Shown piece after piece: positions 19,979 through 36,992 of a DNA stretch of 64,000 nucleotides (position 1 is the first letter of the stretch; every line of letters starts with the position of its first letter). The stretch spans positions 1 to 64,000 of IMG/VR virus record IMGVR_UViG_3300044638_006750; one strand, 5' to 3'. Position numbers and translations under genes: made by a program. The notes beneath the pieces were generated by a model. That model was not told where the DNA came from and did not search any database. It saw nothing but the letters and a program-made list of their open reading frames with translations.

Positions 19979-20002
19979 CGAGATTCTTTTACAAAATTTA
20001 CG

Positions 20003-20080
20003 TAAGTCATTGCCACCATTAAACTTACGACTAAATTCGCGGGCCGGGATCTCCCTAAGTCCTTTAGTGGCAACCACTTA
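20003..20080. repeat. 78-bp double-box element, copy 1
   Basis: TAAGT-N15-ACTTA-N28-TAAGT-N15-ACTTA. Confidence 0.9.
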
Positions 20081-20098
20081 CGTCAAATCCACCATCAT

Positions 20099-20141
20099 AA
20101 AAAAGGAGAAGCCGCCCCCCACCCCTGAGGGACGGCTTCCC
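20099..20141 (-). terminator. Rho-independent terminator after the DUF932-like gene
   Basis: Minus strand GGAAGCCGTCCCTCA-GGGG-TGGGGGGCGGCTTCT stem, then CCTTTTTT. Confidence 0.8.
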
Positions 20142-20168
20142 CGAGCCACGCACCACGAAAGGAGAGCG

Positions 20169-21119
20169 TTAGATGGCGTTGGCGAACTGCAATGCAGTGT
20201 CCAATGCCTTGGAGTTGTCGTTCGCATTCTGGCCGAACCAGAGCGAGTCGAGCCGGTTGTCCGACGTGCGACCCTTGCTGTAGTTCAGGTATTCGTTGAA
20301 ACCGTTGTAGGCAGCCCACCACGTTCCACGAACCCCAACCGCAGCCTGCTTCGGACCTTCGACGAGAGTAAGGATCTCGTCCATGATATTGCGGGTGCGA
20401 GTCTTGATCTCCTCGTCCGCAGTACCTTCGATGCCCAGCAGTACCTTGACATACCGACGAACGTCGGCCTGATTGAAGTTCTTCGACGCGAGGAACCGAT
20501 ACTGTTCAGCAGTCGCTTCGAACTCCGCATTGATGTTGTCCATAATGTCACGGACTTGTTCCAGATTGGTCTTGCTGGAGCGGGTGTGACGAATACGGAT
20601 CAGTTTGCTGCCGCTATGCTTGCTGTGAGCAGCGGCGAGCGTGTTGACGCACACAACCCGGATCGGCGTATAGCCGACACGAATGGCGGTTGTGCCGTCG
20701 TGACTGTTCGACAGCAAAATGAACTTGCAAACCTCGTCACCCTTGACGATTTCGCTATTGTCACGGTTGAGTTGGGCAAGCACCCAAACCTTCTGGCCGC
20801 TATGCAGCGAACCGGCAGTGTGCAACTGGCACTCGCCAGCGTCAAGAAACGGCTGGAACCAATCGAACGCATCGCTGTTTTGCAGCGGAGTGTATCGCGG
20901 ACCAACAACCCCCAGAATAGAGTTATCAGTCTTGCGGTACGTTGCACGGGCGGGAACGGGCGTCCCCTCTTGGGTAAACAGGTCTTTCAGACCAACTTCC
21001 CAATCCAGACCAGCGGCGGTAATCGCCTCCGAAACAGTGGGAGCCTCATCCAACTGGTTCCCCAGACCGTGCCACGGGGTCGCACCAACAAACATCATCT
21101 TTTCAACAGCAGCAGGCAT
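20169..21119 (-). CDS. DUF932/DUF945 phage-plasmid protein (TIGR03299-like)
   Basis: PWHGLG, AGLDWEV, LGVVGPRYTPLQN, LLSNSHDG, TPIRVVCVNTL, GTWWAAYNG. Confidence 0.9.
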   Translation of the reverse strand: MPAAVEKMMFVGATPWHGLGNQLDEAPTVSEAITAAGLDWEVGLKDLFTQEGTPVPARATYRKTDNSILGVVGPRYTPLQNSDAFDWFQPFLDAGECQLHTAGSLHSGQKVWVLAQLNRDNSEIVKGDEVCKFILLSNSHDGTTAIRVGYTPIRVVCVNTLAAAHSKHSGSKLIRIRHTRSSKTNLEQVRDIMDNINAEFEATAEQYRFLASKNFNQADVRRYVKVLLGIEGTADEEIKTRTRNIMDEILTLVEGPKQAAVGVRGTWWAAYNGFNEYLNYSKGRTSDNRLDSLWFGQNANDNSKALDTALQFANAI

Positions 21120-21161
21120 ATCTATCCCTTTCGTGTTACTGAACCTTCGTTACGTCCTTCG

Positions 21162-21202
21162 ATTCTACCATCTATTATCGGCATTGTCAAGGGGGTGTCT
21201 TG
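21162..21202 (-). promoter_or_regulatory. sigma70 promoter with nested sigma28-like motif (type example)
   Basis: Minus strand TCAAG-acacccc-c-TTGACA-at-GCCGATAA-tagatgg-TAGAAT; 17-bp -35/-10 spacer. Confidence 0.85.
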
Positions 21203-21222
21203 AGAAAATTTTGTGATTGTCG

Positions 21223-21300
21223 TAAGTCGTTGTGGCGTAAGCACTTACGTTCAGCCGGGGCGCCCCGCCTGATCCTAAGTCCTTGGCGGACTTGGATTTA
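21223..21300. repeat. 78-bp element, copy 2
   Basis: TAAGT-N15-ACTTA-N28-TAAGT-N15-ATTTA. Confidence 0.9.
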
Positions 21301-21781
21301 GGAATGGGGTCTTGTAGCGTTGTTGAAACATTTTGGCTGTTTCTGTAGTGTACGCACATTCATCTGGAATATAGCAATACAATCCATTACATATTGCTTT
21401 GGGATTATCTTCGTATATAGCTTGACGAATCCATTTGAAAGTATCCCCAGAACAAATAAGATCATCTACTACAATATATCTAAAAGGAGAAACTCCTTCA
21501 ATATAAAAATCGCTGTATCGTTTTTCGTCTGGCTTACGAATAACTACAATATTTTTATTTAGCAGTTCTGCTATCTGAGGAACCACCATCAGTCCGCTTA
21601 CACCACAGCAAGCAATACTATCAAATGTATTAGCGATTGGTCGCAAATCACAAACTGCTTTGATAATAATCTTATTCCGGTTCTTGTGGTTCAAAACTCG
21701 ACACGTATGACTAGCACCCTGAATAATCTTGCCATCATCAGTGCGACGAACATCTTCTATAGATTGATTCATAAGATTCAT
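21275..21781 (-). CDS. Type I phosphoribosyltransferase-like protein
   Basis: CGVSG; VIRK; IVVDDLICSGDT PRPP motif. Confidence 0.8.
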   Translation of the reverse strand: MNLMNQSIEDVRRTDDGKIIQGASHTCRVLNHKNRNKIIIKAVCDLRPIANTFDSIACCGVSGLMVVPQIAELLNKNIVVIRKPDEKRYSDFYIEGVSPFRYIVVDDLICSGDTFKWIRQAIYEDNPKAICNGLYCYIPDECAYTTETAKMFQQRYKTPFLNPSPPRT

Positions 21782-21784
21782 AAA

Positions 21785-21864
21785 AACGGATGGTACGATT
21801 CGAACGTACTAGAAAGAAAGGAATAAAGAGATGATAATAACTTGTCCCACCAAGTTGCATCCGT
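21785..21864 (-). ncRNA. tRNA-like RNA with the anticodon arm replaced by a CU-rich single strand
   Basis: Acceptor ACGGATG/CATCCGT; D-like arm ACTTG-GTGGGA-CAAGT; T arm GTACG-TTCGAAT-CGTAC. Confidence 0.7.
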
Positions 21865-21875
21865 CCGAGAGAAGA

Positions 21876-22097
21876 TCAATCGTCAAGTTCGTCAATGTCA
21901 GAGTAGTAACTCTGGAACTCTGTATTGTATGGTTGACTCTCGTCATCATCAGCGTCAGTCATCCATGCTTCATCGGTTCCATCGTCATAGTAGATTTCAT
22001 CTTCAATATAATCAGCATCTTCGGCTAGATTGTGGTAATCGTATTCGTAATCATTCTCTCTCATAATCAACTCTCCTTTGATACCATCATACACCAA
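21876..22097 (-). CDS. Small, very acidic protein
   Basis: D/E/Y-rich; AAGGAGAG RBS before the internal Met (MRENDY). Confidence 0.65.
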   Translation of the reverse strand: MVYDGIKGELIMRENDYEYDYHNLAEDADYIEDEIYYDDGTDEAWMTDADDDESQPYNTEFQSYYSDIDELDD

Positions 22098-22115
22098 TCA
22101 GCCGCTTTTGTCAAG

Positions 22116-22188
22116 TGGGCCTTCTGGGACTCGAACCCAGAACCAATAGATTAAAAGTCTACTGCGCTGCCAATTGCGCCAAAGGCCC
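22116..22188 (-). tRNA. tRNA-Lys(UUU)
   Basis: Cloverleaf GGGCCTT...AAGGCCC-A; anticodon loop CT-TTT-AA. Confidence 0.92.
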
Positions 22189-22225
22189 GTTTAAACATTA
22201 TATCTTATGATTTGTTTTTGTCAAG

Positions 22226-22297
22226 TGACCCCACGGAGAATCGAACTCCGATCTTCGGGATGAAAGCCCGATATACGAACCATTATACTATGGGGCC
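22226..22297 (-). tRNA. tRNA-Glu(UUC)
   Basis: TCGGG-CT-TTC-AT-CCCGA; T loop TTCGATT. Confidence 0.9.
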
Positions 22298-22336
22298 AGC
22301 CTCGCAACTCAACGTCAGCCTCCGAAGCATTAGAAG

Positions 22337-22412
22337 TAGGGCGTGTACGAGTCGAACGTACCTATGACGACCTTATAAGAGTCGCGGATGCTACCGGCTT
22401 ACCTTACGCCCC
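22337..22412 (-). tRNA. tRNA-Ile(UAU)
   Basis: CGACT-CT-TAT-AA-GGTCG; acceptor GGGGCGT/ACGCCCT-A. Confidence 0.8.
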
Positions 22413-22462
22413 GTGTTTTGTATTCTACTCTGTATATCGACCTTTGTCAAGGGAAACTTTAG

Positions 22463-22549
22463 CGGAATCTGAGGGATTCGAACCCCCGGAGGATTTTAAC
22501 CCTCGGCGGTTTAGTAAACCGCTGCCTTAAACCACTCGGCCAAGATTCC
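22463..22549 (-). tRNA. tRNA-Ser(ACU), long variable arm
   Basis: GCGGT-TT-ACT-AA-ACCGC; variable arm GAGGGTTAAAATCCTC; G73. Confidence 0.85.
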
Positions 22550-22551
22550 AA

Positions 22552-22623
22552 CTGGCGAGACAGGATTCGAACCTGTAACCTAGCGGTTAACAGCCGCTTG
22601 CACTACCGTTGTGCTACTCGCCA
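22552..22623 (-). tRNA. tRNA-Asn(GUU)
   Basis: AGCGG-CT-GTT-AA-CCGCT; G73. Confidence 0.92.
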
Positions 22624-22627
22624 ATAA

Positions 22628-22698
22628 TTCCGGGACTACGATTTGAACGTAGAATAAAGGATCCAAAGTCCTCTGTGATACCGTTTCACCATCCCGGA
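22628..22698 (-). tRNA. tRNA-Gln(UUG)
   Basis: GAGGA-CT-TTG-GA-TCCTT; U1-A72. Confidence 0.9.
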
Positions 22699-22699
22699 G

Positions 22700-22771
22700 A
22701 GCCGACGAAAGGATTTGAACCTTCAACCTATTGATTACAAATCAATTGCACTACCGTTGTGCTACATCGGC
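22700..22771 (-). tRNA. tRNA-Thr(UGU)
   Basis: ATTGA-TT-TGT-AA-TCAAT; GCCGATG/CGTCGGC acceptor. Confidence 0.9.
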
Positions 22772-22775
22772 AATC

Positions 22776-22979
22776 TTAGATATCATACTCTTGTCGCCAC
22801 TCCCTGTCAATATCGTTTCTAGTACGGCGACGTTTGGAGCGACTATCGTATGTAGTGTTGACCCGATCCTCTCTGTGTCCCGTAGGCAGTTGCCATTGAG
22901 GCTTGACTTTGATTTTGATTGTGCGTCGGGGTTGTCGAGTATCGTCGTTGTTGTGGTGCATAGTCATGCCATTGTCCAT
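22776..22979 (-). CDS. Small basic protein (W..GH...D.R.KR.RTR family)
   Basis: Paralog at 32986-33156. Confidence 0.6.
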   Translation of the reverse strand: MDNGMTMHHNNDDTRQPRRTIKIKVKPQWQLPTGHREDRVNTTYDSRSKRRRTRNDIDREWRQEYDI

Positions 22980-23208
22980 TTTCGTGCAGATAGAAAACCT
23001 TGTCGATATTAGGATCGTAAGCCATCAAACAGTATTGTATCGGATAAACCGGCTTTGTCAAGACCTGCTTTTGAGGAAGTTTGGGTAACTTGATATCGCC
23101 TTTCTGATAGTCTTTTACACCATTATAAGCCAAACCAAAAATAGCAATCAAAACCCCGAGCCACTGGATCATTCTTTCGCCCCTTCTTGCTGTTCTTCGT
23201 GTCATCAT
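22843..23208 (-). CDS. Hypothetical membrane-anchored protein
   Basis: Hydrophobic WLGVLIAIFGLAY segment; first ORF after a promoter. Confidence 0.6.
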   Translation of the reverse strand: MMTRRTARRGERMIQWLGVLIAIFGLAYNGVKDYQKGDIKLPKLPQKQVLTKPVYPIQYCLMAYDPNIDKVFYLHENGQWHDYAPQQRRYSTTPTHNQNQSQASMATAYGTQRGSGQHYIR

Positions 23209-23263
23209 ACCATATTTATCGGCAATCGTCCAGCCAGGACTTGAGAAGATTTTTGATTTGCTC

Positions 23264-23341
23264 TAAAGTGTTGCGAGATAAGCACTTATGACGAATCCGG
23301 CCGGCCGCCCTTGCCCTAAGTGCTTTAGGGTCAAGGACTTG
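23264..23341. repeat. 78-bp element, copy 3
   Basis: TAAAG-N15-ACTTA-N28-TAAGT-N15-ACTTG. Confidence 0.9.
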
Positions 23342-23343
23342 TG

Positions 23344-23508
23344 TCAAAGGTCTTGCTCAGTCCGTATGTATTCCATAATGTCATCGCAATCCGTACACAC
23401 TGGTTCTCCCATTTCAGAATAATACCAAGGTTCTACATACGCATGATTATCGCACGATGGACATTCCCACAAGTGTCTAATCTTTTTATCGTCAACTATA
23501 ACCCACAT
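23344..23508 (-). CDS. 54-aa zinc-ribbon protein (absent from ORF track)
   Basis: MWVIVDDKKIRHLWECPSCD...PVCTDCDDIMEY...; follows ORF 23511 directly; stop abuts the element. Confidence 0.7.
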   Translation of the reverse strand: MWVIVDDKKIRHLWECPSCDNHAYVEPWYYSEMGEPVCTDCDDIMEYIRTEQDL

Positions 23509-23743
23509 AGTTATTTCTCCATAGTCCAGCCAGCTTTTTGTATCACCTTCGTACTTTTATAGACTTTCGTATCGGGTAGCGCTGTAGCATAATCCTTGAA
23601 TCCTCTTTCATCTACATAGAAATATTCATCCAGTACATCGAACTGATTTGTTTCCCACAAAGCATCTACTGCCGCACCGAACGGCTTTTTACCTGTGGAA
23701 TAAATCAACTCTAAAGTGCCACACTTAATATAGTATTTAGCCA

Positions 23744-24298
23744 TTATATACTCTCATATCTGCAAGCGGTACAGTTACAACTATGTTCAGTCAAACAATC
23801 CCAATCAATTGCTCCCCATATTTCTTCATCAACAAAACCGAAACTTTCAACGCCAAAATCTATTGGAACAAGTATATTGCCGCTTTTGCGTTTGATCCAT
23901 CCAAAGTTAGCACGATGAGCATCTACATAAGATAATCCATGATACTTTTCTAGCGTCCATACAACAGATTGAATATTGATTGAGTTAGAACATTCACTAT
24001 CAAAACATTCTCCGTCACAATATTCTTCATCATAACATTCGGCCATAGGCTTCGCAACCTCAGTGAGATAACCCCACTCCGTCAACTCTCCCGCGTAACG
24101 TATACGTCCAACATCCCCATAAACTTTTGGAGCCATAGCCATATCGGCCAACCCACTCTGAATACGATGGGCAAAGTCAGCGTTGTCTTTATCCTGAAAA
24201 CATTTAAAACCAAGCCTCTTATTCCCAACAATCCTAAAGAAAGTATTCCTACTTCCTGCATCATCATACAATCCAACATAAGAACTAGGCATTATCAA
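23744..24298 (-). CDS. Protein-kinase-like fold protein
   Basis: GFKCF (beta3 Lys), APKVYG, catalytic-loop-like DAHRAN, IDFG. Confidence 0.65.
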   Translation of the reverse strand: MIMPSSYVGLYDDAGSRNTFFRIVGNKRLGFKCFQDKDNADFAHRIQSGLADMAMAPKVYGDVGRIRYAGELTEWGYLTEVAKPMAECYDEEYCDGECFDSECSNSINIQSVVWTLEKYHGLSYVDAHRANFGWIKRKSGNILVPIDFGVESFGFVDEEIWGAIDWDCLTEHSCNCTACRYESI

Positions 24299-24537
24299 CT
24301 CCCAAGGCTAATCACAACAGTATTATCGTACTTTCCAAACTCTACAATAATATCAAAATCATTATCGTCAAGTATAGACTGTAGCGTTTCCTGACTAATA
24401 AGAGTGTCTGTATTGGTACCAAAACTAATATCACTATTAGAAATGGCTTCCATCACACTACCATAGTCCAACTCGTTATAGTCACAAACTTCTCTAAGGT
24501 CGAGATATTCCCAAGCATAACTTTTCATATTTTATCC

Positions 24538-25242
24538 TTAGTGTGCAGGAAACAATACGTTAGCCAGACCCTTGACGCACATATCGCATGATATACTATC
24601 TTTAGTTCCGGTGCAAGTGATAACCGAGCGACCGCGACGGATTTCTGGACAAACCACAAACTTAGTCGCATTGAGAACAACCAGTTTCGGCAACGCTTTC
24701 CGCCATGCGTCGGCCTTTGCCTTGTTTTTCGGACGCTTAGGTGCAACCTTCATATCGCTATCACACCATGCGAACAGTTTGAAACCTTGGGCCAGTGCTT
24801 CGCCCATGTCGTTATCATCATGCACACTAGCGTATACATTCATATACTTTTGCAGACTCACAAGCCGGGAATCGTAGATATGAGTATAGAACCACATATC
24901 GGGCAGCGTATCGCCATCGGCCAGGATACTCTCACAAGCCCATGTCACGTTGGCAACATAGTCTAGGTCAAGTTCACCATTGAGAAACCAATCGCCACGC
25001 TCATGCCACCGAATAGACTTCTCACGACGCTTTGCGTCCAGAATCATAGCACGGATTTTATTCTTCTCGGTCACGACATTAGCAAAACCAGCAGTACGAG
25101 CGTTCTTATACTGCTTCTCAGTTTGCTCTGCATAGCAACCGTTGTCAAGATAATCACAATCAGGAGGACAAGTGTCCCCAACAGGACGAGAAACAACAAC
25201 ACAACCCTTGCCCAACTTATCGTTACCATCTGCCGTTTTCAT
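24538..25242 (-). CDS. Gp88-like Cys-rich protein
   Basis: TCPPDC...GCYA, IRWHERGD, WFYTH, VCPE...TC...CDMC. Confidence 0.6.
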   Translation of the reverse strand: MKTADGNDKLGKGCVVVSRPVGDTCPPDCDYLDNGCYAEQTEKQYKNARTAGFANVVTEKNKIRAMILDAKRREKSIRWHERGDWFLNGELDLDYVANVTWACESILADGDTLPDMWFYTHIYDSRLVSLQKYMNVYASVHDDNDMGEALAQGFKLFAWCDSDMKVAPKRPKNKAKADAWRKALPKLVVLNATKFVVCPEIRRGRSVITCTGTKDSISCDMCVKGLANVLFPAH

Positions 25243-25327
25243 GGTTTTCTCCTAGCGTGTCTCTCGATTCTACACTAGATTATCGGCACAGTCAAGAGGA
25301 AAACTTTAGAGAGAAAAAGATTTGTCG

Positions 25328-25405
25328 TAAAGTCTTATGGGGTCAGCACTTACGACGAACCCGGCCGCCCGAATTTGTTCTAAGTCTTTACCCTTAAAGA
25401 ACTTA
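25328..25405. repeat. 78-bp element, copy 4
   Basis: TAAAG-N15-ACTTA-N28-TAAGT-N15-ACTTA. Confidence 0.9.
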
Positions 25406-25462
25406 GGAGTACTTCACACAGTTTTAAAAACTGCTCAGTAGTTTCAGCATCGTTTTTCATAA

Positions 25463-25534
25463 TAGCCCCAAGAGGAATCGAACCTCTAATACAGGATTAG
25501 AAATCCCGTGTTATATCCGTTTAACTATGGGGCC
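25463..25534 (-). tRNA. tRNA-Arg(UCU)
   Basis: CGGGA-TT-TCT-AA-TCCTG; GGCCCCA/TGGGGCT acceptor. Confidence 0.85.
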
Positions 25535-25806
25535 GCATTGCTATTATAACATAACCCACTCAACGCCGCAAGCCCCCGTGGCGTCCCACGGAGGCATTTG
25601 CGGTTTTATGGTGTTATCGGCTACCATCTCCATAAGTAATATACTCTAGAAGCCCAATAACTTCAAGGTCACCATCCTATTATTGGCTGGTTAGGCTCTT
25701 CTAGGTTGCACCTTTAAGTCTTGCAACGGACTATCATTACGCGGGAGTTATCCCGCCGCACTATGCCTAAAATCTATTTATACTGGCATAGTCCAGTTTG
25801 TTGATG

Positions 25807-26094
25807 TTAGGCGATTGCCTCCTCCTTGGCAACCTTGCCATCGTGAGCGTCACCAGCCTGTTCGGCAGTTACGCCAGTGACGCGGGCACGCCACACCTTA
25901 TAACCTTGCTCGCTAAACGCCTTGACCTCACCAGCCTTGACATTAGCGTGAATGTCGCTGGACAGCGAACCACTCAGGCACTCACGAATCGAATCAACAA
26001 CACTGTCACGATCCAGTTCGTCCGCAACAATATCAACCGCAAAAGAAAACTTCTTCATAGTAATCAACCTTTCCAAAAGTGTTACAGTTACCAA
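25807..26094 (-). CDS. Hypothetical protein
   Basis: GAAAGG RBS before the internal MKKFSF; probable start near 26058. Confidence 0.65.
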   Translation of the reverse strand: MVTVTLLERLITMKKFSFAVDIVADELDRDSVVDSIRECLSGSLSSDIHANVKAGEVKAFSEQGYKVWRARVTGVTAEQAGDAHDGKVAKEEAIA

Positions 26095-26265
26095 TCACAT
26101 ACTACCAGTATACGCTACTGATAGCCACTTGTCAAGTCTGCCATGAAGGTTTCTTTCGTTGGCATCGTGGCAGCCACTTGCTTCGTGTTCCATCATTCTA
26201 CAGTATATTATCGGCATTGTCAAGGCCGAACTTGAGGAGTTACTCAAAAATTTTTTCTTTTGTCC

Positions 26266-26343
26266 TAAGTCGTTTAGCCGTAAGGACTTACGTCGAACCC
26301 GGCCCGCCTGCCTAGTCCTAAGTTCTTTAGGGACAAGGCTTTA
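26266..26343. repeat. 78-bp element, copy 5
   Basis: TAAGT-N15-ACTTA-N28-TAAGT-N15-CTTTA. Confidence 0.9.
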
Positions 26344-26345
26344 GG

Positions 26346-26720
26346 TCATGAAAGATAACCCTCACAACCCAAAGTGGTCAGATCACGCAGCAGTGCCTCT
26401 GCCGCTTCCGGCGTTTTCAGAGTCATCGTATTTCGATTGGTGCCACTATCACGCCACTTACCGAACTGGTCGTAGTGACCAACAATCACATCCGTCCAAT
26501 CCTTGGCTTCTTTCAGACCCCATCCGGTGTGCAGTCGGATAGCCTTGATACAGTGAATACGGTTGTTTGTACTCATACCTCCGGTGATTGTCACCATACG
26601 ACGCTGATTCACACCCAGCGCCATCTCCAAGGCACACACGATCTTCTCGTACATGTCCAGATTGCAGCCGTTGGATACAAGGTTCAGGGCCTCACGCACA
26701 CTCAAATCAATCTTGATCAT
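26346..26720 (-). CDS. Protein with a ribosomal protein bL12 (L7/L12) C-terminal-like domain
   Basis: NRIHCIKAIRLHTGWGLKEAKDW and EAAEALLRDLTTLG match the bL12-CTD pattern KIxxIKxxRxxTGxGLKEAK...EAE.L...L...G. Confidence 0.75.
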   Translation of the reverse strand: MIKIDLSVREALNLVSNGCNLDMYEKIVCALEMALGVNQRRMVTITGGMSTNNRIHCIKAIRLHTGWGLKEAKDWTDVIVGHYDQFGKWRDSGTNRNTMTLKTPEAAEALLRDLTTLGCEGYLS

Positions 26721-27199
26721 ATTCCAAAACTTTCTGTATACTTAGGGTCTATCTCGTAAATGCCGTCAAAATTTCCGTTGCGTTCTTCTAGAACATATAC
26801 CTGTTTGCCATGAGTAATCAAGGTATCATATTCACTATTGTCCCAAATAAACTCGTTGTTGTCACTTTCTCGTCGCCAGTGCGGATCACGAAGTGGATTA
26901 TAGAACAACTTTTCCAGATTGTCAATAGGCAAAATCGGGTAAAAGTCCTTACGCAACATCACCTCATCACACCTTACCCATCCACTCACATCATGCACAC
27001 CAGCCTCAAATACCTGTTTAGCCTTATTCGGCCTATTCCACAACTTACAACCCCTCATCTCCAACTGATATTCAGCAGGATCATAATAGCAAACCTCAAC
27101 AGTCTTTCCTCCCTGCTTAACTTTAATTTGCCAGTGCATATAGTGGGATCCACCACCCAAATGAAATCTCACTTCTCCATACAAAGGTTTCTGTTTCAT
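26717..27199 (-). CDS. Hypothetical protein (VRFHL...HWQIK family)
   Basis: Overlaps the start of 26720; own promoter at about 27208-27235. Confidence 0.7.
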   Translation of the reverse strand: MKQKPLYGEVRFHLGGGSHYMHWQIKVKQGGKTVEVCYYDPAEYQLEMRGCKLWNRPNKAKQVFEAGVHDVSGWVRCDEVMLRKDFYPILPIDNLEKLFYNPLRDPHWRRESDNNEFIWDNSEYDTLITHGKQVYVLEERNGNFDGIYEIDPKYTESFGI

Positions 27200-27436
27200 A
27201 CTTATACTATACTCTATCGTTCAGTTGTTGTCAATAGACCCTATACACTGGCTGACTACATCCACCCTATCCGAATCCGAAGGATTAGACAAGACAGATA
27301 GATTGGGTTATGCCATACTCGGCTTTGCATTTAACCGTGGCTTCTTTGATATCATTCTGCCAGCGGCCCTCATCTATCGTCTGCCTTAGTATACATCTAT
27401 TATCGGCAAGAGTCAAGAGAAGTCTTTAGAAAATCG

Positions 27437-27514
27437 CAAAGTGTTGAACTATAAGCACTTACGACGATTTCGGCCCGCCGAACTTGTCCTAAGTCTTTAT
27501 GTGATCACTAGTTA
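27437..27514. repeat. 78-bp element, copy 6
   Basis: CAAAG-N15-ACTTA-N28-TAAGT-N15-AGTTA. Confidence 0.88.
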
Positions 27515-27636
27515 GCAACATACCACCAATGGCAGTTTGCACAGAAGTGCCATATAATACCATAGTCATGGTCATATTTGTATACTAGAACATCACATTT
27601 GCCACACGGACAAATATCGCTAAGTGTTTTAAGCAT
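27508..27636 (-). CDS. 42-aa Cys-rich peptide (absent from ORF track)
   Basis: MLKTLSDICPCGKC...HFCANCHWWYVAN; overlaps the stop of 27629; its TAG lies inside the element. Confidence 0.55.
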   Translation of the reverse strand: MLKTLSDICPCGKCDVLVYKYDHDYGIIWHFCANCHWWYVAN

Positions 27637-28930
27637 TGTCTCGCACCAATTCTATATACTTGTTCACAAGTTCAGGAGCTGATATCTCATGCAGCCCAAT
27701 CAATTCTTTAACCTTGTTTCTCTGAGCATTACTCATTGCACTCATACGAGAGTTAAGAAAATTCAGAACATAGATAATGGCTTGCTCACGATTCATATCA
27801 CAAGCTTCCACAGTATTTAAGTCTCTAAAGTTTTTAGCCATTAGGATAATCCTCTGGGTAGTCTTTTGCAGGCTTAATCGGTCTGCTCATCACACCATCA
27901 TCTGGCATCCACCACGGAGCATCCATTCGGTCAACCAAGCCGGGAGATTCATGACAAAAAATCAGATGTGGACTGAACGGATCATTCTCAGAATAAGAAT
28001 ACTCTCCAGCCCACACGCCAATATGCTCACCATAGTACCAGATACCCTGCCCGTGCTCTGGTTGCTTCTCAAAGAAACTAATCCATTCCATCAGGAAGTC
28101 TCCTCAGTATTTCCATCCATCAGCTTATTAAATACATTCTCCTGCATCTTCATAAACTGTTTCTGATTGCCCCAATACTCTCCGCGTTCCATATTCTCAC
28201 ATACCAGATTATACAGATAGTTCAGTTCGGTTTTGGTCAGTTCAATCGTTGTAGTTTTCATTACCAATTCTCCGGCATAGGAATCTCACCAAAACTAGTA
28301 TAGCATACGACGCCATGACTGTCAATCTTCATGGTTCCCTCATTAACAAAGGGCGTCCATTCTGGCAAACCATCGTCAAATTCACCATGCGTCCACTGCC
28401 CCCATCCACCCCTATCCTTATCCCACATAAGAACCATAGGACAATCATATCCAGCAACGCAACACAGATACTCATCATCTATAATAGGATCGCCATAATG
28501 CCAATTCATTTTACTTTCTTCTTTTTCTTCTTCTTAGGCTTACTAGGCAACTTAGTCTCTATCTCAATCTCTTCTATTCTAACCGGTCTTAGCGTATTGT
28601 CCATAGCATCAAACCATGCTTCGGCAATCTTTCTGGTTTTACAGACCATCTGGGTTTCTTCATGGATACAACCAGCCCCATACTCACAGATAATAGCGTA
28701 ACCTTTCATTTTCCCCTCCCAATAATCAAGCACTTCTCACCCTTATCTCCATCCATATGGCTCACAGACTCATGAGGACCATAATACCACCTATCCTTAT
28801 CGTTCACATTGAAAACAATCTCGTCAGTCTTCAATCCGACATCATTATATCCACCCTCATATCCAAGCGTAAGAACCCGCATATCGGACGGATAGTTCTT
28901 CAACTGCTCAATAAACTCTGCAATGGTCAT
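27629..28930 (-). CDS. Operon of small hypothetical ORFs (28706-28930, 28506-28733, 28261-28509, 27834-28091, 27629-27841)
   Basis: Coupled ORFs behind a sigma70-like promoter at about 28948-28976. Confidence 0.7.
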
Positions 28931-29011
28931 GATCTCTCCTTTTCCAGCATTCTACCATCTATTTTCTATCTGTCAAGAGTATTAAAATACCGGCTGTTAA
29001 TGGATCGACTT

Positions 29012-29084
29012 ACCAGATAACAGGATTCGAACCTGTAACTCCTCTCATCTCTGAGTGGAACTCTGCCATTTGAGTTATATCCAG
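29012..29084 (-). ncRNA. tRNA-like RNA or pseudo-tRNA with a GAGA-tetraloop stem instead of an anticodon loop
   Basis: D arm ACTC-AAATGGCA-GAGT; T arm ACAGG-TTCGAAT-CCTGT; middle TCC-A-CTCA-GAGA-TGAG-A-GGA. Confidence 0.6.
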
Positions 29085-29456
29085 CGATAGTTTTACGATT
29101 AATGTCCGGTATCACGCATTAACCAACCACAGACCGTCATTTGGTGGTTTCTATCCGACCCCTGTTTGTAACCAGCGAATCTTTTACGCCCCGATTCTAT
29201 AACCCACCAATACTCCGATATTATGAACCCTTGGAGCAAGGTAAACACTGGTGGAAACCGTCCACGGAAATCCTCCCTGCAAATAAGGTGGTATTGCGCA
29301 TATAACCCTATTTGGTCTGGCTCTTGGAACGGTTACTGGTTGTTTGGTATCCGGCTGTTGTTTCAGTGATTCTACCCGATGAAAGATAAAATGCAAGCGC
29401 ATTGTTGCAGTGTTAATTCACTCTATTACCCGATGAAGGATAATACCGGATTGTAT

Positions 29457-29594
29457 TGGAGCGTGACCAAGGATTCGCACCTTAGTAGATTGGTATACTA
29501 TCCTAACGTATAACCCCGTTAGGCAACCCCACGCTGCATAACAGACCGTAGGTTTATCGTACAGGTTATCCCAATCTAGTCGCTAGACTCACGC
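29457..29594 (-). ncRNA. tRNA-like RNA with a pseudoknotted insert, copy A
   Basis: GCGTGA/TCACGC acceptor plus TCCA end; T-like arm TAAGG-TGCGAAT-CCTTG; insert closed by TAGATTGG/CCAATCTA. Confidence 0.72.
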
Positions 29595-29601
29595 ATTATA
29601 T

Positions 29602-29743
29602 TGGTCGTAATGAGGACGCCATCCCCCATAGATTAGCATTACTATACAACGTATAAGCCCGTTGTCAACCCCATCTCTGCCGAGACATGCGGGGTTTATC
29701 GTAATGGCTTATCCTAATCTAGTCCCGTCGCATGGACCTACGA
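29602..29743 (-). ncRNA. tRNA-like RNA with a pseudoknotted insert, copy B
   Basis: TCGTAG/TTACGA stem plus CCA; GTCC/GGAC arm; insert closed by TAGATTAG/CTAATCTA; covaries with copy A. Confidence 0.7.
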
Positions 29744-29836
29744 AAGTTTGTTTTGTCTTACTCAATCATTCTACATCTATTATCGTCACTTGTCAAGAGC
29801 CATCTGTAGGAATTCCAAAAATTTTTTGTATTGATG

Positions 29837-29914
29837 TAACCCTATGATACACAAGCACTTACGACAAACTCGGCGGGCCACCCTCGTCCTAAGTACCCTT
29901 GGGCAAAGCACTTA
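29837..29914. repeat. 78-bp element, copy 7
   Basis: TAACC-N15-ACTTA-N28-TAAGT-N15-ACTTA. Confidence 0.9.
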
Positions 29915-29929
29915 GGGCGAAGGGACGAT

Positions 29930-30409
29930 CTAGGCGTTTACTTCCTCATCGTCTTTGAAAAACTCCTGCATATCATACTCGTTCCACAATGCTACAGGAA
30001 TCATATCCTTACTATTGTAGTCGCAGTAGTTATCAGCACCATTATCCCATATACCACAGAAAGCCATCCCCGGTTCCCAATAGGTTGCTCGTACATTATA
30101 TCCTAATTCTACAAGTTTCTCATATAAACCGACAGGAGGACTCCAGGCACTATCAAAAGAGCAACAAACCTCGTTATCAACCCTAGTGGCTTTCAAACCA
30201 TATCGTTCCTCTTTTTCTGTGCCAACATCGGCCCCAATATCCCACTTGGTTCCCCAGTTGTTGATTTGCCAGTTATACCAATCTTCGCCCTCCGGCAACG
30301 GCAAAAACTCACTACAAGCCTTACCTAGATTGTAGGCTTTCTCAAACCTATCAACCATATCCTTATTAGGATGGGAAACCGTCAACTTGTTCATGCACCA
30401 GTTAGGCAT
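29930..30409 (-). CDS. DUF1281/Api92-like ferredoxin-fold protein
   Basis: MPNWCMN, WYNWQINNWGTKWD, FDSAWSPP, YWEPGMAFCG. Confidence 0.8.
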   Translation of the reverse strand: MPNWCMNKLTVSHPNKDMVDRFEKAYNLGKACSEFLPLPEGEDWYNWQINNWGTKWDIGADVGTEKEERYGLKATRVDNEVCCSFDSAWSPPVGLYEKLVELGYNVRATYWEPGMAFCGIWDNGADNYCDYNSKDMIPVALWNEYDMQEFFKDDEEVNA

Positions 30410-31121
30410 ATAAACCTTTCAGTTTAGGGTTGTGGTCAATGCTTCATAGCGAGCATCACGCTTGGCTGCTTCCAAAGCCTTGCAGAAAAACTGATGAAAG
30501 TCATCCAAGTCAGCATGAATCTCTTGCTCTGTTTTGCCAATAGAAAGAATCATTCTCATAGCAAAAGCAGCGACATGATCCGCAATCAGACTCTTTTCTT
30601 CTTCAGACAGGCTCATTTTTTACCTCTTTAGCGTCAGCGATCCAATCCCCAATATACACTCGTTCTACAAACAATCTATCGCCATACTTCATGTTAGCCA
30701 TACGTATAGCGTCCCATTCGCTAAACGCTTTGACATATCCAACCAGCCGACAGTCTTTGACCACGGCCCAAGTATACATTGTCATTCATCTTCCTCCACG
30801 CCCCCAAACATCTCATCCCACGTTTCTGCGTCAATACCGGTCATGAGAATCTCACGATCATCGGCATTGAGATACGGGAAGCAGTTTTGAATCAAACCGC
30901 CATTCAGCCATTCGTTAGCATCACTCAGTTTTGTGGTAATGCTAAACGGACGACCACCCACACTGATACCGCTAAACACCACATCGTCACCGACAACATT
31001 TCGGTCAACCGCATCAGTCATAGCATATCGAGTCAACATCTTTTTTCTCCTTGTGTTCACCGATTCTATCATGTATTATCGGCTTGTCAAGAGGAAAAAC
31101 CTTAGAAAAAGTTTCGCTATC

Positions 31122-31199
31122 TAAACCCTTGTCGGATAAGGACTTACGTCATGCGGGGCGGCGCGGCCTTACCCTAAGTGCTGCAATAGCAACACCTTA
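31122..31199. repeat. 78-bp element, copy 8
   Basis: TAAAC-N15-ACTTA-N28-TAAGT-N15-CCTTA. Confidence 0.9.
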
Positions 31200-31221
31200 G
31201 GGCTTGGCTCGACATTTGATA

Positions 31222-31629
31222 CTAGAACATCATCGCGGCCAAACCGCTCTTGAACAAAGCACCAGCCAGCAAAGGTCTACGACAGTTGGTAGTACGCTCT
31301 GCGTAGAAGTTACGAACACTGCCATTCGGCATCTTGCAAGTAACAAGATGACTGGTACGCACAAACTGCGGATCATTACGACGATACGCACTACGGGTAT
31401 TCAGTCTTCGGATACTTGCACTGTCCAGAGTATGAACATCCAGAACCTTAGCAAGATAACGCTCAGGATCGCCCTTTGCGGGCTGTTCATAAACAAAGTT
31501 ATACACTTCGCCAACCTTTGCTGTACTCAGTGATCCATGCACACCACCGTACACAGAATACGTCAGGAATGCAATCACAGCAGTAGCAACAACAACAATA
31601 CCACCAATCACAAACGTCAAATCGCTCAT
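31222..31629 (-). CDS. Membrane-anchored hypothetical protein
   Basis: N-terminal TM helix; GAAAGGG RBS; own promoter. Confidence 0.7.
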   Translation of the reverse strand: MSDLTFVIGGIVVVATAVIAFLTYSVYGGVHGSLSTAKVGEVYNFVYEQPAKGDPERYLAKVLDVHTLDSASIRRLNTRSAYRRNDPQFVRTSHLVTCKMPNGSVRNFYAERTTNCRRPLLAGALFKSGLAAMMF

Positions 31630-31763
31630 ATCAACCCTTTCGTTAGAAAAACTAGAACCACAACTCCAACCATTCTACATCTATTATCGTCATTTGTCAA
31701 GCGGAAACTTTAGAAATCTATCCCGTTCAGTTGCGTAAGGCTTGTCCTCTTGTTCTATATCTA

Positions 31764-32324
31764 TTATCGACCAACAGTACCTACCTTCTTTAGAGAATTT
31801 GGGTAGAACTTGAAAAAATCTCGAATGTCGTCGTTGTATGCCATATTGGCATTATCACAAGTCGCATCAAAATAGAGATAATACCCGCTATCTTGTCGAG
31901 TCAGATTTTGCGTATACTTCTTGACATGCTTTTGCTCACTCCATTTTGTCACTAGTCCATTAGGAGTAATAAAAATCATGAACAAAATATCGAAACATTC
32001 AGGCTTGACACCACTGAAAACGCAAATGCTCTTGGAGCCTTTCTTGGTGTGTTTGGGAAACATCTTAGCAGTCTTGACTTCGCAACGAATGTTGTCGTTC
32101 AAAAGAATGTCAAAAGATTTCGTACCACCATGCCTCTTGACATCATATCCGTTTTGACGCAGCCGACGAGCCATCAGTTTCTCGCCGCATTGACCAATAG
32201 CATACGGGTCAAGACGAGAAAGAGTATACGCTAACTTGTTCAGTTTGGGGCAAAAATAGGTTTCCGGCTCCAAACACTTGATTCCGTTCTTGATCTTATG
32301 AAAGTCACGCATCGTGAACATCAT
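31764..32324 (-). CDS. PD-(D/E)xK nuclease-like protein
   Basis: GEKLM...FDILL...CEVKTA. Confidence 0.65.
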   Translation of the reverse strand: MMFTMRDFHKIKNGIKCLEPETYFCPKLNKLAYTLSRLDPYAIGQCGEKLMARRLRQNGYDVKRHGGTKSFDILLNDNIRCEVKTAKMFPKHTKKGSKSICVFSGVKPECFDILFMIFITPNGLVTKWSEQKHVKKYTQNLTRQDSGYYLYFDATCDNANMAYNDDIRDFFKFYPNSLKKVGTVGR

Positions 32325-32403
32325 TATTCTCCTGTAGTTATGGCTATTCTACAAGAGTATCGGCTATTGTCAATAGATTTAGTGAAAAAATTATTTTTTG
32401 TTC

Positions 32404-32481
32404 TAAACCTATGGCAGATAAGAACTTACGACAAATCGGGCCGCTCCGCCTCACCCTAAGTGCTTTAGGGATAAGGCTTTG
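32404..32481. repeat. 78-bp element, copy 9
   Basis: TAAAC-N15-ACTTA-N28-TAAGT-N15-CTTTG. Confidence 0.9.
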
Positions 32482-32985
32482 CGTTCACTCAAAATCCACA
32501 AAAATAACCTGATTATATCCACGAGGCTTGATGGTTAGGCTCTCACCATAGTCATAGGTGTCAGCCTTTACGTTTGTCATACCAACAGCTTTCTTCGCGT
32601 AATATGTAATAGTACGCTGTGAGGCTTCATTGGGTAGATCAAATCCATATCGGTTAACCCAACCATAATTAGCTTCACCACCCAGCGTATCAGTAATTAT
32701 CACATTCACCTTCATCTCCAAACTCCTTATGTTCAAATACAAGATCGCTCATCAAATAGGATACCAGAATCCCAGCAGCCATACCCAAACCGAAAATCAC
32801 ATAACCATCCATGGCTCTTTTCCTTTTAGTTTATAAGATAGGTTGCCACACAACCGCCCAAAAAACTCGCCAGAAACAAGATTTTCTCACTGAAACTCAT
32901 GCTTGCACCATTCTACTTTAGAAAGATTATTCTGTCAAGTGCTGACTACAAGCCATTGTAGCCGAATCCGAAGGATTAGCAGAGA

Positions 32986-33156
32986 CTACCAGCCATCTCC
33001 TATTGCCTTTCGATTGTTCGCCCCGCGAGTCCGAAGACGCTTGGGACGGTTATCGTGCTTACCACTACCTCCAAGGTGGGGGTTGTGACCTTTGCCTATT
33101 TCCCATACTTGACGCACGTTCAATACCAACACCATGTTTTTCTTGCGTTTGCTCAT
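32986..33156 (-). CDS. 56-aa basic protein (absent from ORF track)
   Basis: MSKRKKNMVLVLNVRQVWEIGKGHNPHLGGSGKHDNRPKRLRTRGANNRKAIGDGW; directly behind a promoter. Confidence 0.65.
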   Translation of the reverse strand: MSKRKKNMVLVLNVRQVWEIGKGHNPHLGGSGKHDNRPKRLRTRGANNRKAIGDGW

Positions 33157-33218
33157 GTTCTTTACTCTACCATATTATCGACCAAAGTCAAGCACAACCT
33201 GTAAGAATTTTTTTGTCA

Positions 33219-33296
33219 TAAGTCATTGGCAGCAAAAGACTTAGAACTAATCCGAGCGGCCCCGCTTGCCACAAGTGCTGTAGCAGCAAGGGTTTA
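33219..33296. repeat. 78-bp element, copy 10
   Basis: TAAGT-N15-ACTTA-N28-CAAGT-N15-GTTTA. Confidence 0.88.
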
Positions 33297-33545
33297 CGAT
33301 CAGAAATCTCCAACAGTATTCAAGCGTACAGGCTCGCTCTTGAATGAACATACATTCAGTCCACTAGCAGCCACAACAGTATCGAACATGATACCGAGAA
33401 ACTCCTGCCTTTCAACTGCTGTACTCATATCATGTTCTGGCAACTCTAACAGAAACTCACGATCAACGGCAATCTCATCACCATTATCATTCTCTACGAG
33501 AATATCATAGAAGCGATGCGTGTTCATACTGTGCTCTCCTTGGGT

Positions 33546-33866
33546 TCAATCGTAGTAGGGGCCATCTTCGTTGTAATCAACATAACCGATTGCATCATCG
33601 GCATGGAAATCCTCTCGGTCATCTCCGTAGTAGCCGTAATCCTCATCTGTTCCCCAACCGCATGACGCAAGGCCGGACTCGTGATCTCCGTCCATATCAT
33701 CATTAATATCCTCATCAACCCAGTCCACCTCTCCACTATTATCATCCTCGTCGTAAAAGTCGTTGTAATCGTCATAGTTAGAATCTTCTTCGTCGCCAAC
33801 GTAGGCCATGTCATCGTCCTCATAAGCGTTATCGGGATCGAACAGGGGGTCAGGGTGACTCATCAT
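33546..33866 (-). CDS. Extremely acidic protein (DGDHESGLASCGWGTDEDYG)
   Basis: D/E-dominated; AG-rich RBS; own promoter. Confidence 0.75.
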   Translation of the reverse strand: MMSHPDPLFDPDNAYEDDDMAYVGDEEDSNYDDYNDFYDEDDNSGEVDWVDEDINDDMDGDHESGLASCGWGTDEDYGYYGDDREDFHADDAIGYVDYNEDGPYYD

Positions 33867-34170
33867 CTTCCTCTCTTTCTTGTATCGGCAGTCTACCAGA
33901 AAAACTTTAGGCTGTCAAGCCCTACCAGCCGTTTCGGCGATATTCTTCTCGGAGTTCCTCTTCTTCACGACGCTGACGATCATTCACAGGAGGGCCATAT
34001 CCCAGATCATATGCTTCTCGCGCAGCATCATATCCATCATCAGAATCTTCGTCATTCCATTGGTCGTATCGACTCATCTTTCACTCTCACTTTCTCTACT
34101 TCTTATATCGTCAAGTCTAGCATCTCAACTTTAGCCTGTCAAGAGAAAATCTAAAAATTTTTTGTTGACG

Positions 34171-34248
34171 TAAACTGTTGAGACATAAGGACTTACGTTT
34201 CGCGGGGCCGGCCGGCCTCACCGCAAGTGCTTATGCGGCAAGGCTTTG
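34171..34248. repeat. 78-bp element, copy 11
   Basis: TAAAC-N15-ACTTA-N28-CAAGT-N15-CTTTG. Confidence 0.88.
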
Positions 34249-34915
34249 CGTCAAACCGTAAACTCTACGTCCGGTTCGATCTGGTCACTAATCCCCACCA
34301 CCTCAGCCCAATCGTAAAAATCGACTTGGACACTAGGATCATCAATCGGCTCAACCATCGGCTCAAGAATACCCTGCTCTGCCATCTCGTCAAGGATCCG
34401 GTTTACTGCGTCGAAATCCAGCATACTGTTTTCCTTTGGGGTGGTGAGAACAAAAGCCATCATATGCGGAAAGTGTGTCATTGTCAAGCCCTTATTTCAT
34501 GAGTCTAAGAACAGCCTCCAACCTCGCAATTTCCAGCCTCAATTCAGCCACCTTGCCGAACATCCTAGCCTGTCGATAATTGTCGATATCGTATCGCAGG
34601 CTTATGATCTGATAGTTGATGGTTTCGCGTGTCATGGTCTTCCTTTCTCTAATCTAGTCTACACTCGGCCGTCCTACTTGTCAATACGCTTCTCAAAAAT
34701 TGTGTCCAAATAAATCTCTTTTTCACTGACCACCCATCCATACTCACAACGAGGGGTATACACACCAATATAGACTTTCCCTTTTTCGACTCCCTCAAAT
34801 CCCAGACCATAACCGAACAACCCAGCCAGAAATATCATAGAGAACATAAAAGGTTCCTTTCTATGTATATTATCGGCTAATTCCCGCTAACATCTTTAGC
34901 ACAAATAATTTCACC

Positions 34916-34993
34916 TAAATCCCTATCCTGCAACAACTTACGACCAGCCGGGGCGCGCCCCTGCATCGTAAGTCTTTACGTCGCAAGGGTTTG
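34916..34993. repeat. 78-bp element, copy 12
   Basis: TAAAT-N15-ACTTA-N28-TAAGT-N15-GTTTG. Confidence 0.88.
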
Positions 34994-35091
34994 CGTCAAT
35001 TTTTGTTATTGTAGAACGGACTGATTACACAATAGGCAAAACCGACATATCCGATGATGAACATTAAGGCACTGAACATTTTATAGTCTTT

Positions 35092-35928
35092 CTATTTACA
35101 GGGTTGCAGATCGTATAGGGAACAGTGGACAGTCCTACCGTCATCATACTGTACTGATGCCCAAGCATCTTTTGTACCATAAATCTCATCGGCCAAGACA
35201 CCCATGAAACATTTCACCACAACCTTTTGACCGTCCAGCATCACAGTATCCCCGTATCGAGGGGTGTGTTCAGCAGTAAACATTTTTAGTTTTCGTCCTT
35301 CCATGCAAATGGGCTGATTTCTTCGCCATATGCCGTAATGGCTTCGTACTGAGCCTTCAACGCTTCCACACGCTCTTTGCTGCCCGGCTTGCCAACCTTC
35401 ACGATCATGGTATCGTCTCCACCAATAAGCCGAGGATCGGCCTTCTCGACACGAATTTTGCCGAGCCGACGCAGTGCTTTCCGATTGAACTTCAAAACCT
35501 TTTCAGAAACCACATACCGCTTCTGGTCTGCAACTCCGTAAACGTAGTCGGTATCTTCGGTGATTCGATCATCGGGAATCTCTACCAGCATGGGAATCGC
35601 GATACCCTTGAAAACCATACGGGCCTGACGCTTGGCGTTCTCAATAATGGCAAACTTCGTTTTCATCTTTGTCTCTCTTTCTTGTGTGTGGATTCTAGCA
35701 ACCTGTCTACCGCTTGTCAAGCCCTCAAATCTTCCAGTGGGAGAACTTCAGGGTGAACACTTGTCCAGGGTACTTGCTTGCGATGTACGCTTCGGCGGTT
35801 TCCTTCCGATTGTCGGTAGCCGAAACACCCTGAACCACCTTACCGTCGATGATGACGCTCCAGATTCGACGCTTGCGAATCTTCGGCAGGGAAGCGATGA
35901 AACTGTTGACGCTAGTGACCTTTTCCAT
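35092..35928 (-). CDS. Hypothetical early ORFs (35725-35928, 35286 to about 35666, 35092 to about 35284)
   Basis: AG-rich leaders (AGAAAGAGAGA...ATG). Confidence 0.7.
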
Positions 35929-36052
35929 CTTTTCTCTCTCTTTCTTTCTCTTATATCGACATTATACCATGGATTCTTGAGGTTGCAAGAGAAATCTAGA
36001 AATTTTTGTGTCAAGATTTTTTGACAAAACTTTTGCCTGCTTTTTGAGCATT

Positions 36053-36068
36053 TGGCATACTATTTGCT
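36053..36068 (+). promoter_or_regulatory. sigma54-type -24/-12 motif
   Basis: TGGCATACTATTTGCT (GG-N10-GC). Confidence 0.55.
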
Positions 36069-36077
36069 AGTGCGTCA

Positions 36078-36155
36078 TAAGTTCTTGTGGCTTAAGCACT
36101 TACGTCAAAATTTGCCCGCCCTCCTCGTTGTAAGTCTATATGCGGCAAGCAGTTA
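36078..36155. repeat. 78-bp element, copy 13
   Basis: TAAGT-N15-ACTTA-N28-TAAGT-N15-AGTTA. Confidence 0.9.
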
Positions 36156-36912
36156 CGATTAGTTTTCGCGTCCTACATACCAAGTTTTCCCACTATCGTC
36201 TTTCATTTTTTTCCACCCCATTTTCGCAAAATACCTATCTTGAAGATAGTTGTCAACAAGCCTAAATGTTTGCAAGAAAATCCACCAACCAACCGTAGAG
36301 CCAACAAACCAAGCCCCAATAAACCATATTGCCAAGGTTGCCCACATCTCCACCTCTGCTTCACTCATGTTTCCCCTTTCGGTTTAGGATACGCCCATCC
36401 AAGAAGCGTTTTCACAACAATAATCGTAGAACATATCGTTCAGAACTTCTTCATAGTTCTTATCTTTCAAGAGCCTACGGTCAAGGGTTGAGTCACACTC
36501 AGCATAAAACTTACCCTTTCCTACTTCAAACACAATCGTACAGGCATGAGCCTCACTACCCCAAATCCTAGCCTTAGCATCCACAAACTTCTTCAACATC
36601 TTTTTCTCTCTTTCTTAGTACGATTCTAGTAGATGGTTTCAATGTTGTCAAGCCCCACAAGCCACTTCCCACTCATGGGGCATATAGCCTTTTTGCAGTT
36701 CGGTTGTGCTGCACTCGCATTGCACACCGGCCAGATCGACCACCCATACATCACCCTCGTCGAAGTACCAATCAACAATCTTTCCAGTGATTCCACCAAG
36801 CCGAACCTTGTCACCAATCTCGTACATTCTAGCCTTTCTTTCTTGTTGCCTGTATTCTATACATCTATTATCGACTTGTCAACAGTGAAAACTGAAGAAA
36901 TTTTTTTAGACT

Positions 36913-36990: not shown

Positions 36991-36992
36991 TG

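Follow-up and report, generated by a model that had tools for sequence, protein, structure and literature searches.

A serine tRNA gene with the anticodon ACU in a freshwater jumbo phage, in other uncultured viruses and in bacteria

Background

Why would a phage carry a serine tRNA with the anticodon ACU? Anticodons that start with A are treated as universally absent from split codon boxes, and the usual reason given is that A34, or inosine in its place, would misread the codons of the neighboring amino acid. One review calls this anticodon "universally missing" and adds that the ANN anticodons 'prohibited' in bacteria are absent from phages as well (PMC8007984), so a tRNA-Ser(ACU) is a notable exception. 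The original prediction for this locus held that A34 anticodons other than Arg-ACG are very rare, which agrees with a literature that treats them as essentially absent. A 2019 survey of viral tRNAs has no discussion of ACT, and the only mention of tRNA-Ser(ACU) that we found in the literature is an uncommented table entry for the chlorovirus ATCV-1 (PMC4810235). What is new here is a phage accessory tRNA, itself a known type, that bears an anticodon class thought to be excluded.

The gene and its genome

The window analyzed here is the first 64 kb of an IMG/VR virus record of 232,683 bp. Its source is a 233-kb freshwater jumbo phage with 35% GC, 10 tRNA genes and one tmRNA, and its protein genes include those for a large terminase, a portal and an RtcB RNA ligase. 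Metagenomes of lakes and fresh water from 20 studies contain DNA almost identical to it. There is no close relative among cultured phages, the terminase being at most 29% identical to any of theirs, and a DNA search of the region against them matched only the tRNA-Thr. The gene, its parts and its context are listed below, the tRNA-Arg(UCU) and the RNA ligase as context only.

22463 to 22549, minus strand: tRNA-Ser(ACU) gene, class II, 87 nt, CCA not encoded (ARAGORN, Rfam, sequence, covariation)
22513 to 22515, minus strand: anticodon ACT, within the loop TTACTAA at 22511-22517; A34 is position 22515 (T on the plus strand)
22115 to 22771, minus strand: cluster of seven tRNA genes, Thr(UGU), Gln(UUG), Asn(GUU), Ser(ACU), Ile(UAU), Glu(UUC) and Lys(UUU) (ARAGORN and Rfam)
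25463 to 25534, minus strand: tRNA-Arg(UCU), the AGA reader in the other half of the AGN box, about 3 kb from the cluster (ARAGORN; Rfam 65 bits)
2446 to 3813, minus strand: RtcB-type RNA ligase, a tRNA repair enzyme (PHROG 1075 'tRNA splicing ligase', E=1.6e-91)

The gene was first described as a well-formed class II tRNA-Ser with the loop UU-ACU-AA, and ARAGORN, Rfam and the sequence all bear this out, on the minus strand. The ARAGORN call, tRNA-Ser(act), spans 22462-22549(-), and RF00005 matches 22463-22549(-) over the full model (1-71) at 55 bits (E=4e-9; gathering score 29). Read on the minus strand, the acceptor stem is a perfect 7 bp (GGAATCT/AGATTCC) with a discriminator G, the D stem has 3 bp, and an anticodon stem of 5 bp (GCGGT/ACCGC) encloses the 7-nt loop TTACTAA. 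The variable arm is long, with its own 4-bp stem, and the T arm has the loop TTCGAAT. The long stemmed variable arm, G73 and the G1-C72/G2-C71 start of the acceptor stem are all features of a class II tRNA-Ser. The identity elements read by SerRS are the long variable arm and the acceptor end, not the anticodon. No SerRS and no CCA-adding enzyme were found in the phage genome; since the phage encodes neither and SerRS ignores the anticodon, host enzymes presumably add CCA and charge the tRNA with serine.

Ser(ACU) is the fourth of the seven genes in the cluster, and the cluster order is repeated in related viral contigs. Its neighbor tRNA-Ile(UAU), at 22336-22412 (-), recurs in the phage clade, in 24 of 130 ACT loci among the matches listed, and would read AUA without lysidine; the review gives this anticodon too as lost in prokaryotes (PMC8007984). 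The tRNA-Thr(UGU), at 22711-22774, shares 93.8% identity across 64 nt with the tRNA-Thr of rV5-like coliphages and has 118 matching records, some of them deposited as Campylobacter phages.

The surroundings have other peculiarities. From about 20000 to 40000 the GC content rises to 0.43-0.46, from 0.32-0.37 on either side, and codon usage differs: CGT stands at 20.8 against 4.0 and AGA at 6.7 against 24 per 1000 codons and AAT/AAY is 0.47 against 0.81. This island contains the tRNAs, a ribozyme and numerous small ORFs and may be a mosaic or acquired region. The ribozyme is a full-length Pistol (RF02679, 53.7 bits against a gathering score of 34.5) at 25735-25797 (-), about 200 nt from the tRNA-Arg(UCU). 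A tRNA-like gene at 29011-29085 (-) has an anticodon loop of 8 nt, in which ARAGORN reads the four-base anticodon 'gaga'; it reaches only 37.8 bits against the Rfam tRNA model, several of its stem positions are G-U or mismatched, and the gene may be either a degenerate tRNA or one of the frameshift type. At 42006-43832 (-) lies the gene of a 608-aa protein with an end-to-end match to PHROG 13807 (E about 1e-202) and a glutamine amidotransferase/GlmS-like N-terminus. The tmRNA, with the tag peptide GANQLALAA, lies outside the window at genome position 217291-217643 (-).

The anticodon in close relatives and in reads

Is the A at position 34 real? Read support upholds it: Logan contigs from two independent lake-water DNA runs have no alternative base at 22515, and in one lake-water DNA run (X1) contigs cover the tRNA-Ser(ACU) gene with zero differences. 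The relatives agree. We scanned IMG/VR with a pattern for the anticodon arm in which the three anticodon bases were left free, and ACT was found in 29 of the 29 matches listed. A second scan used only the 5' half of the tRNA, which leaves the entire anticodon arm free; it added five further contigs, all five with ACT, for a total of 34 of 34 among the matches listed. The orthologous proteins of these 34 relatives are only about 64% identical to those of the window. The tRNA is nearly unchanged in them, with compensatory changes in the T and acceptor stems. A comparison with relatives had been proposed along with the original prediction, and ACT is indeed kept in them; the large family and the occurrence in bacteria described below were not foreseen there.

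The wider viral family

A generic serine pattern, with the D arm fixed, the anticodon stem free and the loop given as YTACTAA, finds tRNA-Ser(ACT) in at least 118 viral contigs of IMG/VR, mostly phage-like and uncultured. ARAGORN confirms tRNA-Ser(act) in 130 of the 133 loci listed, and among these matches the 130 genes comprise 71 distinct sequences, 27 anticodon-stem variants and 37 clusters at 90% identity. The invariance of ACT in this set carries no weight because the pattern requires it, but the covariation of the stems does count. With 63 sequences aligned, pairing holds in 98.8% of cells, and 18 of the 24 pairs have compensatory changes at both positions. Covariation scores 0.656; shuffled alignments score 0.186 (none of 500 shuffles reaches the observed value) and slid partners at most 0.14. 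The stem of the variable arm is paired in 100% of the 63 homologues, and most copies have the discriminator G. The tRNA-Ser(ACU) gene is real and strongly selected.

How common is A34 among such genes? A joint scan that allowed R at position 34 gave about 22 ACT loci among the 80 viral matches listed. This implies A34 in about one in four of the viral tRNA-Ser genes of AGY type that have this D arm, subject to redundancy among the contigs. Frequencies from such listings are rough, and the counts are lower bounds. Ser(GCT) adjoins Ser(ACT) in only 2 of the 130 loci listed, so ACT fills the AGY slot in these tRNA sets.

The collection of cultured phages holds no close copy for the four ACT tRNA types that were queried, and the nearest tRNA-Ser homologues are of the TGA or GCT types, at no more than 81.5% identity. 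One tRNA-Ser(ACT) locus lies on a contig labelled as a giant-virus MAG (L253, IMGVR_UViG_GVMAG-S-1035192-18_000001). It recalls the chlorovirus ATCV-1, a freshwater virus listed with the same anticodon; however, ATCV-1 is a virus of eukaryotes, and its putative tRNA-Ser(ACU) is a single entry in a table that also lists other doubtful anticodons (PMC4810235).

Other tRNAs with A34 were seen on some ACT-bearing contigs. The related viral contig L020 has a second A34 serine tRNA, Ser(AGA), at 5034-5119 (-), near the Ser(ACU) gene and in the same cluster; it would match UCU, the other abundant U-ending serine codon. ARAGORN also calls Leu(aag) or Phe(aaa) in L204, L218, L219, L220, L226, L238, L264 and L265. 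These calls look atypical, the 'Leu' being 77 nt with C33 and two of the 'Phe' 96-97 nt.

Bacterial carriers

Bacterial and archaeal genomes were scanned with the same arm, and among the 121 matches listed 111 were tRNA-Ser(UGA), four were GCT and one was ACT. The ACT copy (L064) is on a contig of 60% GC from a Lake Baikal MAG labelled Planctomycetaceae, where its neighbors are molybdenum-cofactor genes, a peptidase and a redoxin. Ser(GCU), Ser(GGA) and Ser(CGA) are encoded in the MAG as well. Its ACU tRNA is unlike its own GCU tRNA, from which it differs in the anticodon stem and the variable arm, and has the D arm, the anticodon arm and a T-stem mismatch in common with the phage copies. This sharing of sequence points to an exchange of tRNA-Ser(ACU) between phages and cells, which could have gone in either direction. 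Identity between the remaining tRNAs of the phage and those of the MAG is only 64-76%, and an assignment of the host by tRNA similarity failed.

The exact arm is present in 6 of the 31 closest relatives of the Baikal MAG. We rejected the idea that ACU is a general trait of its phylum, the exact arm being found in 1 of 401 genomes sampled. All five relatives that were tested keep Ser(GCU) together with a full-scoring TadA. Five metagenome contigs are syntenic with the Baikal contig, and all have the ACT gene at the same site, with flanks 82-91% identical. A second lineage has a different ACT tRNA amid ordinary bacterial genes on a contig of 962 kb and 44% GC. The conserved syntenic site and this second locus lead us to conclude that the gene is stably inherited in at least two bacterial lineages. 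In all, at least 120 metagenome contigs carry ACT. The bacterial carriers have about 60% GC and prefer AGC (AGT/AGY is 0.30 in the Baikal contig), and because of that preference codon supply fails to explain why these GC-rich cells retain the gene.

What the tRNA may read

On balance we lean, with no great margin of confidence, towards a functional accessory tRNA-Ser whose A34 is unmodified and reads AGU by a Watson-Crick pair. After CCA addition and serylation by the host, A34 would stay as it is, and A:U pairing at AGU would replace the G:U wobble of tRNA-Ser(GCU). An AT-rich and AGU-rich phage would thereby gain a dedicated supply for AGU, and AGC would be left to the host tRNA. That A34 is left unmodified, that the tRNA is charged and that it benefits AGU decoding are all inferred.

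Codon usage is the main evidence. Among the serine codons of the phage AGT makes up 27% and AGC 12%, a 2.2-fold difference, and the codons that match the anticodons of the phage tRNAs are all within the top 19 by usage. Viral contigs with ACT have 18.5 AGT per 1000 codons and those with GCT 10.4 (p=1.5e-6), a comparison that serves as a proxy for phage against host codon usage. The ACT contigs are also poorer in GC, with a median of 0.41 against 0.45, and 4 of 109 exceed 50% GC against 39 of 98 GCT contigs. The differences persist after collapse to tRNA clusters (p=0.002-0.005), although the p-values overstate independence even then, the contigs being mutually related. The ORFs behind these counts were called mechanically. 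Once the T/C preference of the other NNY codons is regressed out, the AGT excess specific to ACT contigs is small (+0.04 +/- 0.02), and in the phage itself every other two-codon NNY pair has a higher share of T than AGY, where AGT/AGY is 0.69. A match between this tRNA and AGU usage had been proposed for late genes in particular. The general form of that proposal is supported, both by the excess of AGT over AGC and by the AGT-richness of ACT contigs relative to GCT contigs, but the late-gene form is not: the structural module has 21.0 AGT per 1000 codons and the rest 20.9.

Why should the serine tRNA have A34 in these clusters? The tRNAs of the queuosine family found there (Asn, Tyr, Asp, His) have G34 in all cases. 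Queuosine balances the reading of U and C in those tRNAs, and serine has no such modification. That G34 is kept in the one group and A34 appears in the other would fit such balancing.

The difficulty for an AGU decoder is misreading. Unmodified A34 can read more than U in some systems, and therefore it may also misread AGA and AGG. We considered whether a co-carried tRNA-Arg(UCU) acts as a guard for AGA and found no specific support for this, as it accompanies ACT and GCT tRNAs equally, in 23% of cases each.

Alternative explanations

The dedicated AGU decoder must be weighed against several other accounts. One, which we regard as unlikely, is that A34 lets the tRNA escape an anticodon nuclease of the host or of a competitor that cuts tRNA-Ser(GCU), so that AGY codons can still be decoded in the infected cell. 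There is precedent for phage tRNAs whose altered anticodon loops protect them from defences that cleave tRNA, and mycobacteriophages avoid the serine anticodons that are cut by VapC toxins (PMC10264068). The RtcB ligase and the tmRNA of this phage suggest pressure on its translation machinery, though the ligase is circumstantial genomic context for tRNA-Ser(ACU) and any connection between the two putative at most. Evasion might also explain better than codon supply why the gene is retained in GC-rich bacteria that prefer AGC. On the other hand, it does not predict a tie to AT-rich and AGT-rich genomes, and an A34 tRNA would not restore the decoding of AGC. A nuclease specific for tRNA-Ser(GCU) was not found in the literature on phage tRNAs and tRNA-cleaving defences that we consulted. 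Nor, to our knowledge, has one been described elsewhere.

An equally doubtful account, also considered in the original prediction, is that A34 becomes inosine. Editing would fall to the TadA of the host, to a relaxed form of that enzyme or to one not yet recognised, and one tRNA would then serve both AGU and AGC, which would explain why phage sets have ACT in place of GCT. All bacterial carriers tested have TadA, and the loop UUACUAA agrees with the TadA motif YUACGAA at 6 of 7 positions; when TadA is overexpressed about 30% of the edited sites lie off the core motif (PMC12255301), and its specificity is widened in some Firmicutes (PMC11472039). The seventh position is the problem. The loop has U36 where TadA needs G36, the single-position mutations tested in the motif, with its core UACG, abolish or nearly abolish editing (PMC12255301), and G36 is kept even in the relaxed S. 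pyogenes motif YUAMGRA (PMC11472039). Inosine at position 34 also pairs with A, and an ICU anticodon would be harmful because it would put serine at AGA, which is the main arginine codon of the phage (62%) and behaves as arginine. Carrier bacteria keep tRNA-Ser(GCU), which would be redundant beside an ICU tRNA. We also rejected a TadA encoded by the phage itself, the only deaminase in the genome being of the ComEB/dCMP type. A metatranscriptome contig that spans the tRNA (X19 record 14) has A, not G, at position 34 and 0 differences, which argues slightly against editing; the consensus includes the neighboring tRNA, so it derives from precursor RNA or from DNA, and either origin is compatible with editing of the mature tRNA.

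We think it very improbable that the tRNA works outside translation, for example by acting as a decoy, yielding regulatory fragments or marking a site for recombination. It has been suggested that 'missing' tRNA species may have non-canonical roles (PMC8007984). The present gene, however, sits within an ordinary cluster of decoding tRNAs and its presence tracks AGT usage, and 63 diverse copies keep the stems, the 7-nt loop with U33 and A37 and the serine identity features.

Still harder to sustain is the idea that unmodified A34 reads all four AGN codons, with AGA and AGG recoded or mistranslated as serine. A34 can decode whole four-codon boxes in some mycoplasmas and organelles. Here, though, AGA at aligned orthologous positions swaps mainly with AGG, CGA and CGT (Arg 72 against Ser 20), AGG exchanges with arginine and lysine codons, and the phage owns a tRNA-Arg(UCU) for a codon that supplies 62% of its arginines. 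These exchanges largely refute the recoding of AGR to serine, and the genetic code of the phage is standard.

Finally, a sequencing error, a recent or singleton G>A change in a GCU family, or a decaying pseudogene, for which we found no supporting point, can be set aside with near certainty, given ACT in 34 of 34 relatives listed, the lack of a read variant in independent runs, the at least 118 viral and at least 120 metagenome contigs with ACT, the strong compensatory covariation and a gene kept at its syntenic bacterial site despite flanks only 82-91% identical.

Comparison with known systems

The closest known tRNA is the bacterial tRNA-Ser(GCU). It too is class II, with a long variable arm, G73, U33, C35, U36, A37 and A38, and in Bacteroidota and others (L051, L061, L073, L099) its anticodon arm is identical except for G34. 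The wobble base is what sets the two apart, G34 there and A34 here, and carrier bacteria keep both as separate genes.

The codon-compensating tRNA clusters of the T4/T5 type in large lytic phages (PMC10264068, PMC6409571) are a second likeness: Ser(ACU) too is clustered, its neighbors serve mostly A/U-ending codons that abound in the phage, and its carriers are AT-rich. The T4/T5-type sets use anticodons that are also present in cells, whereas Ser(ACU) breaks the ANN rule (PMC8007984). Gene-encoded A34 is also found in the tRNAs that TadA edits, tRNA-Arg(ACG) in nearly all bacteria and tRNA-Leu(AAG) in S. pyogenes and O. oeni (PMC11472039), and the loop of tRNA-Arg(ACG) has 6 of 7 positions in common with that of Ser(ACU). 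But those tRNAs serve four-codon boxes in which I34 is harmless, and they have G36; Ser(ACU) has U36 and serves a split box in which I34 would misread arginine codons.

The phage tRNAs that escape nucleases, such as the T5 tRNA-Lys that faces PARIS (PMC11464382) and those of mycobacteriophages (PMC10264068), resemble Ser(ACU) in having an altered anticodon loop, and the present genome also has an RNA repair ligase. In those cases the anticodon is kept, neighboring bases of the loop change and the nuclease is known, whereas in Ser(ACU) it is the wobble base that differs.

Conclusions

We tentatively suggest, as a possibility rather than an expectation, that these genes make up a large class of A34 tRNAs for split boxes that has been overlooked, that is found both in uncultured phages and in several lineages of bacteria, that has some property specific to A34 and that was spread by exchange between phages and cells. 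If this is true, the rule that such anticodons are universally excluded is contradicted. Retention in cells at 60% GC, beside tRNA-Ser(GCU) and TadA, would then suggest a property that the G34 tRNA lacks: it might decode U strictly, bear a modification of A34 that is new, or resist a toxin that targets tRNA.

An exception that is natural, abundant and under selection, in viruses and in cells with TadA, makes the rule testable. It raises the questions of whether A34 is unmodified, how AGA and AGG escape misreading and which advantage makes up for the danger. Some of the tRNA repertoire of viruses is overlooked when only cultured phages are surveyed, and a natural U-specific decoder could serve the engineering of codon-specific translation.
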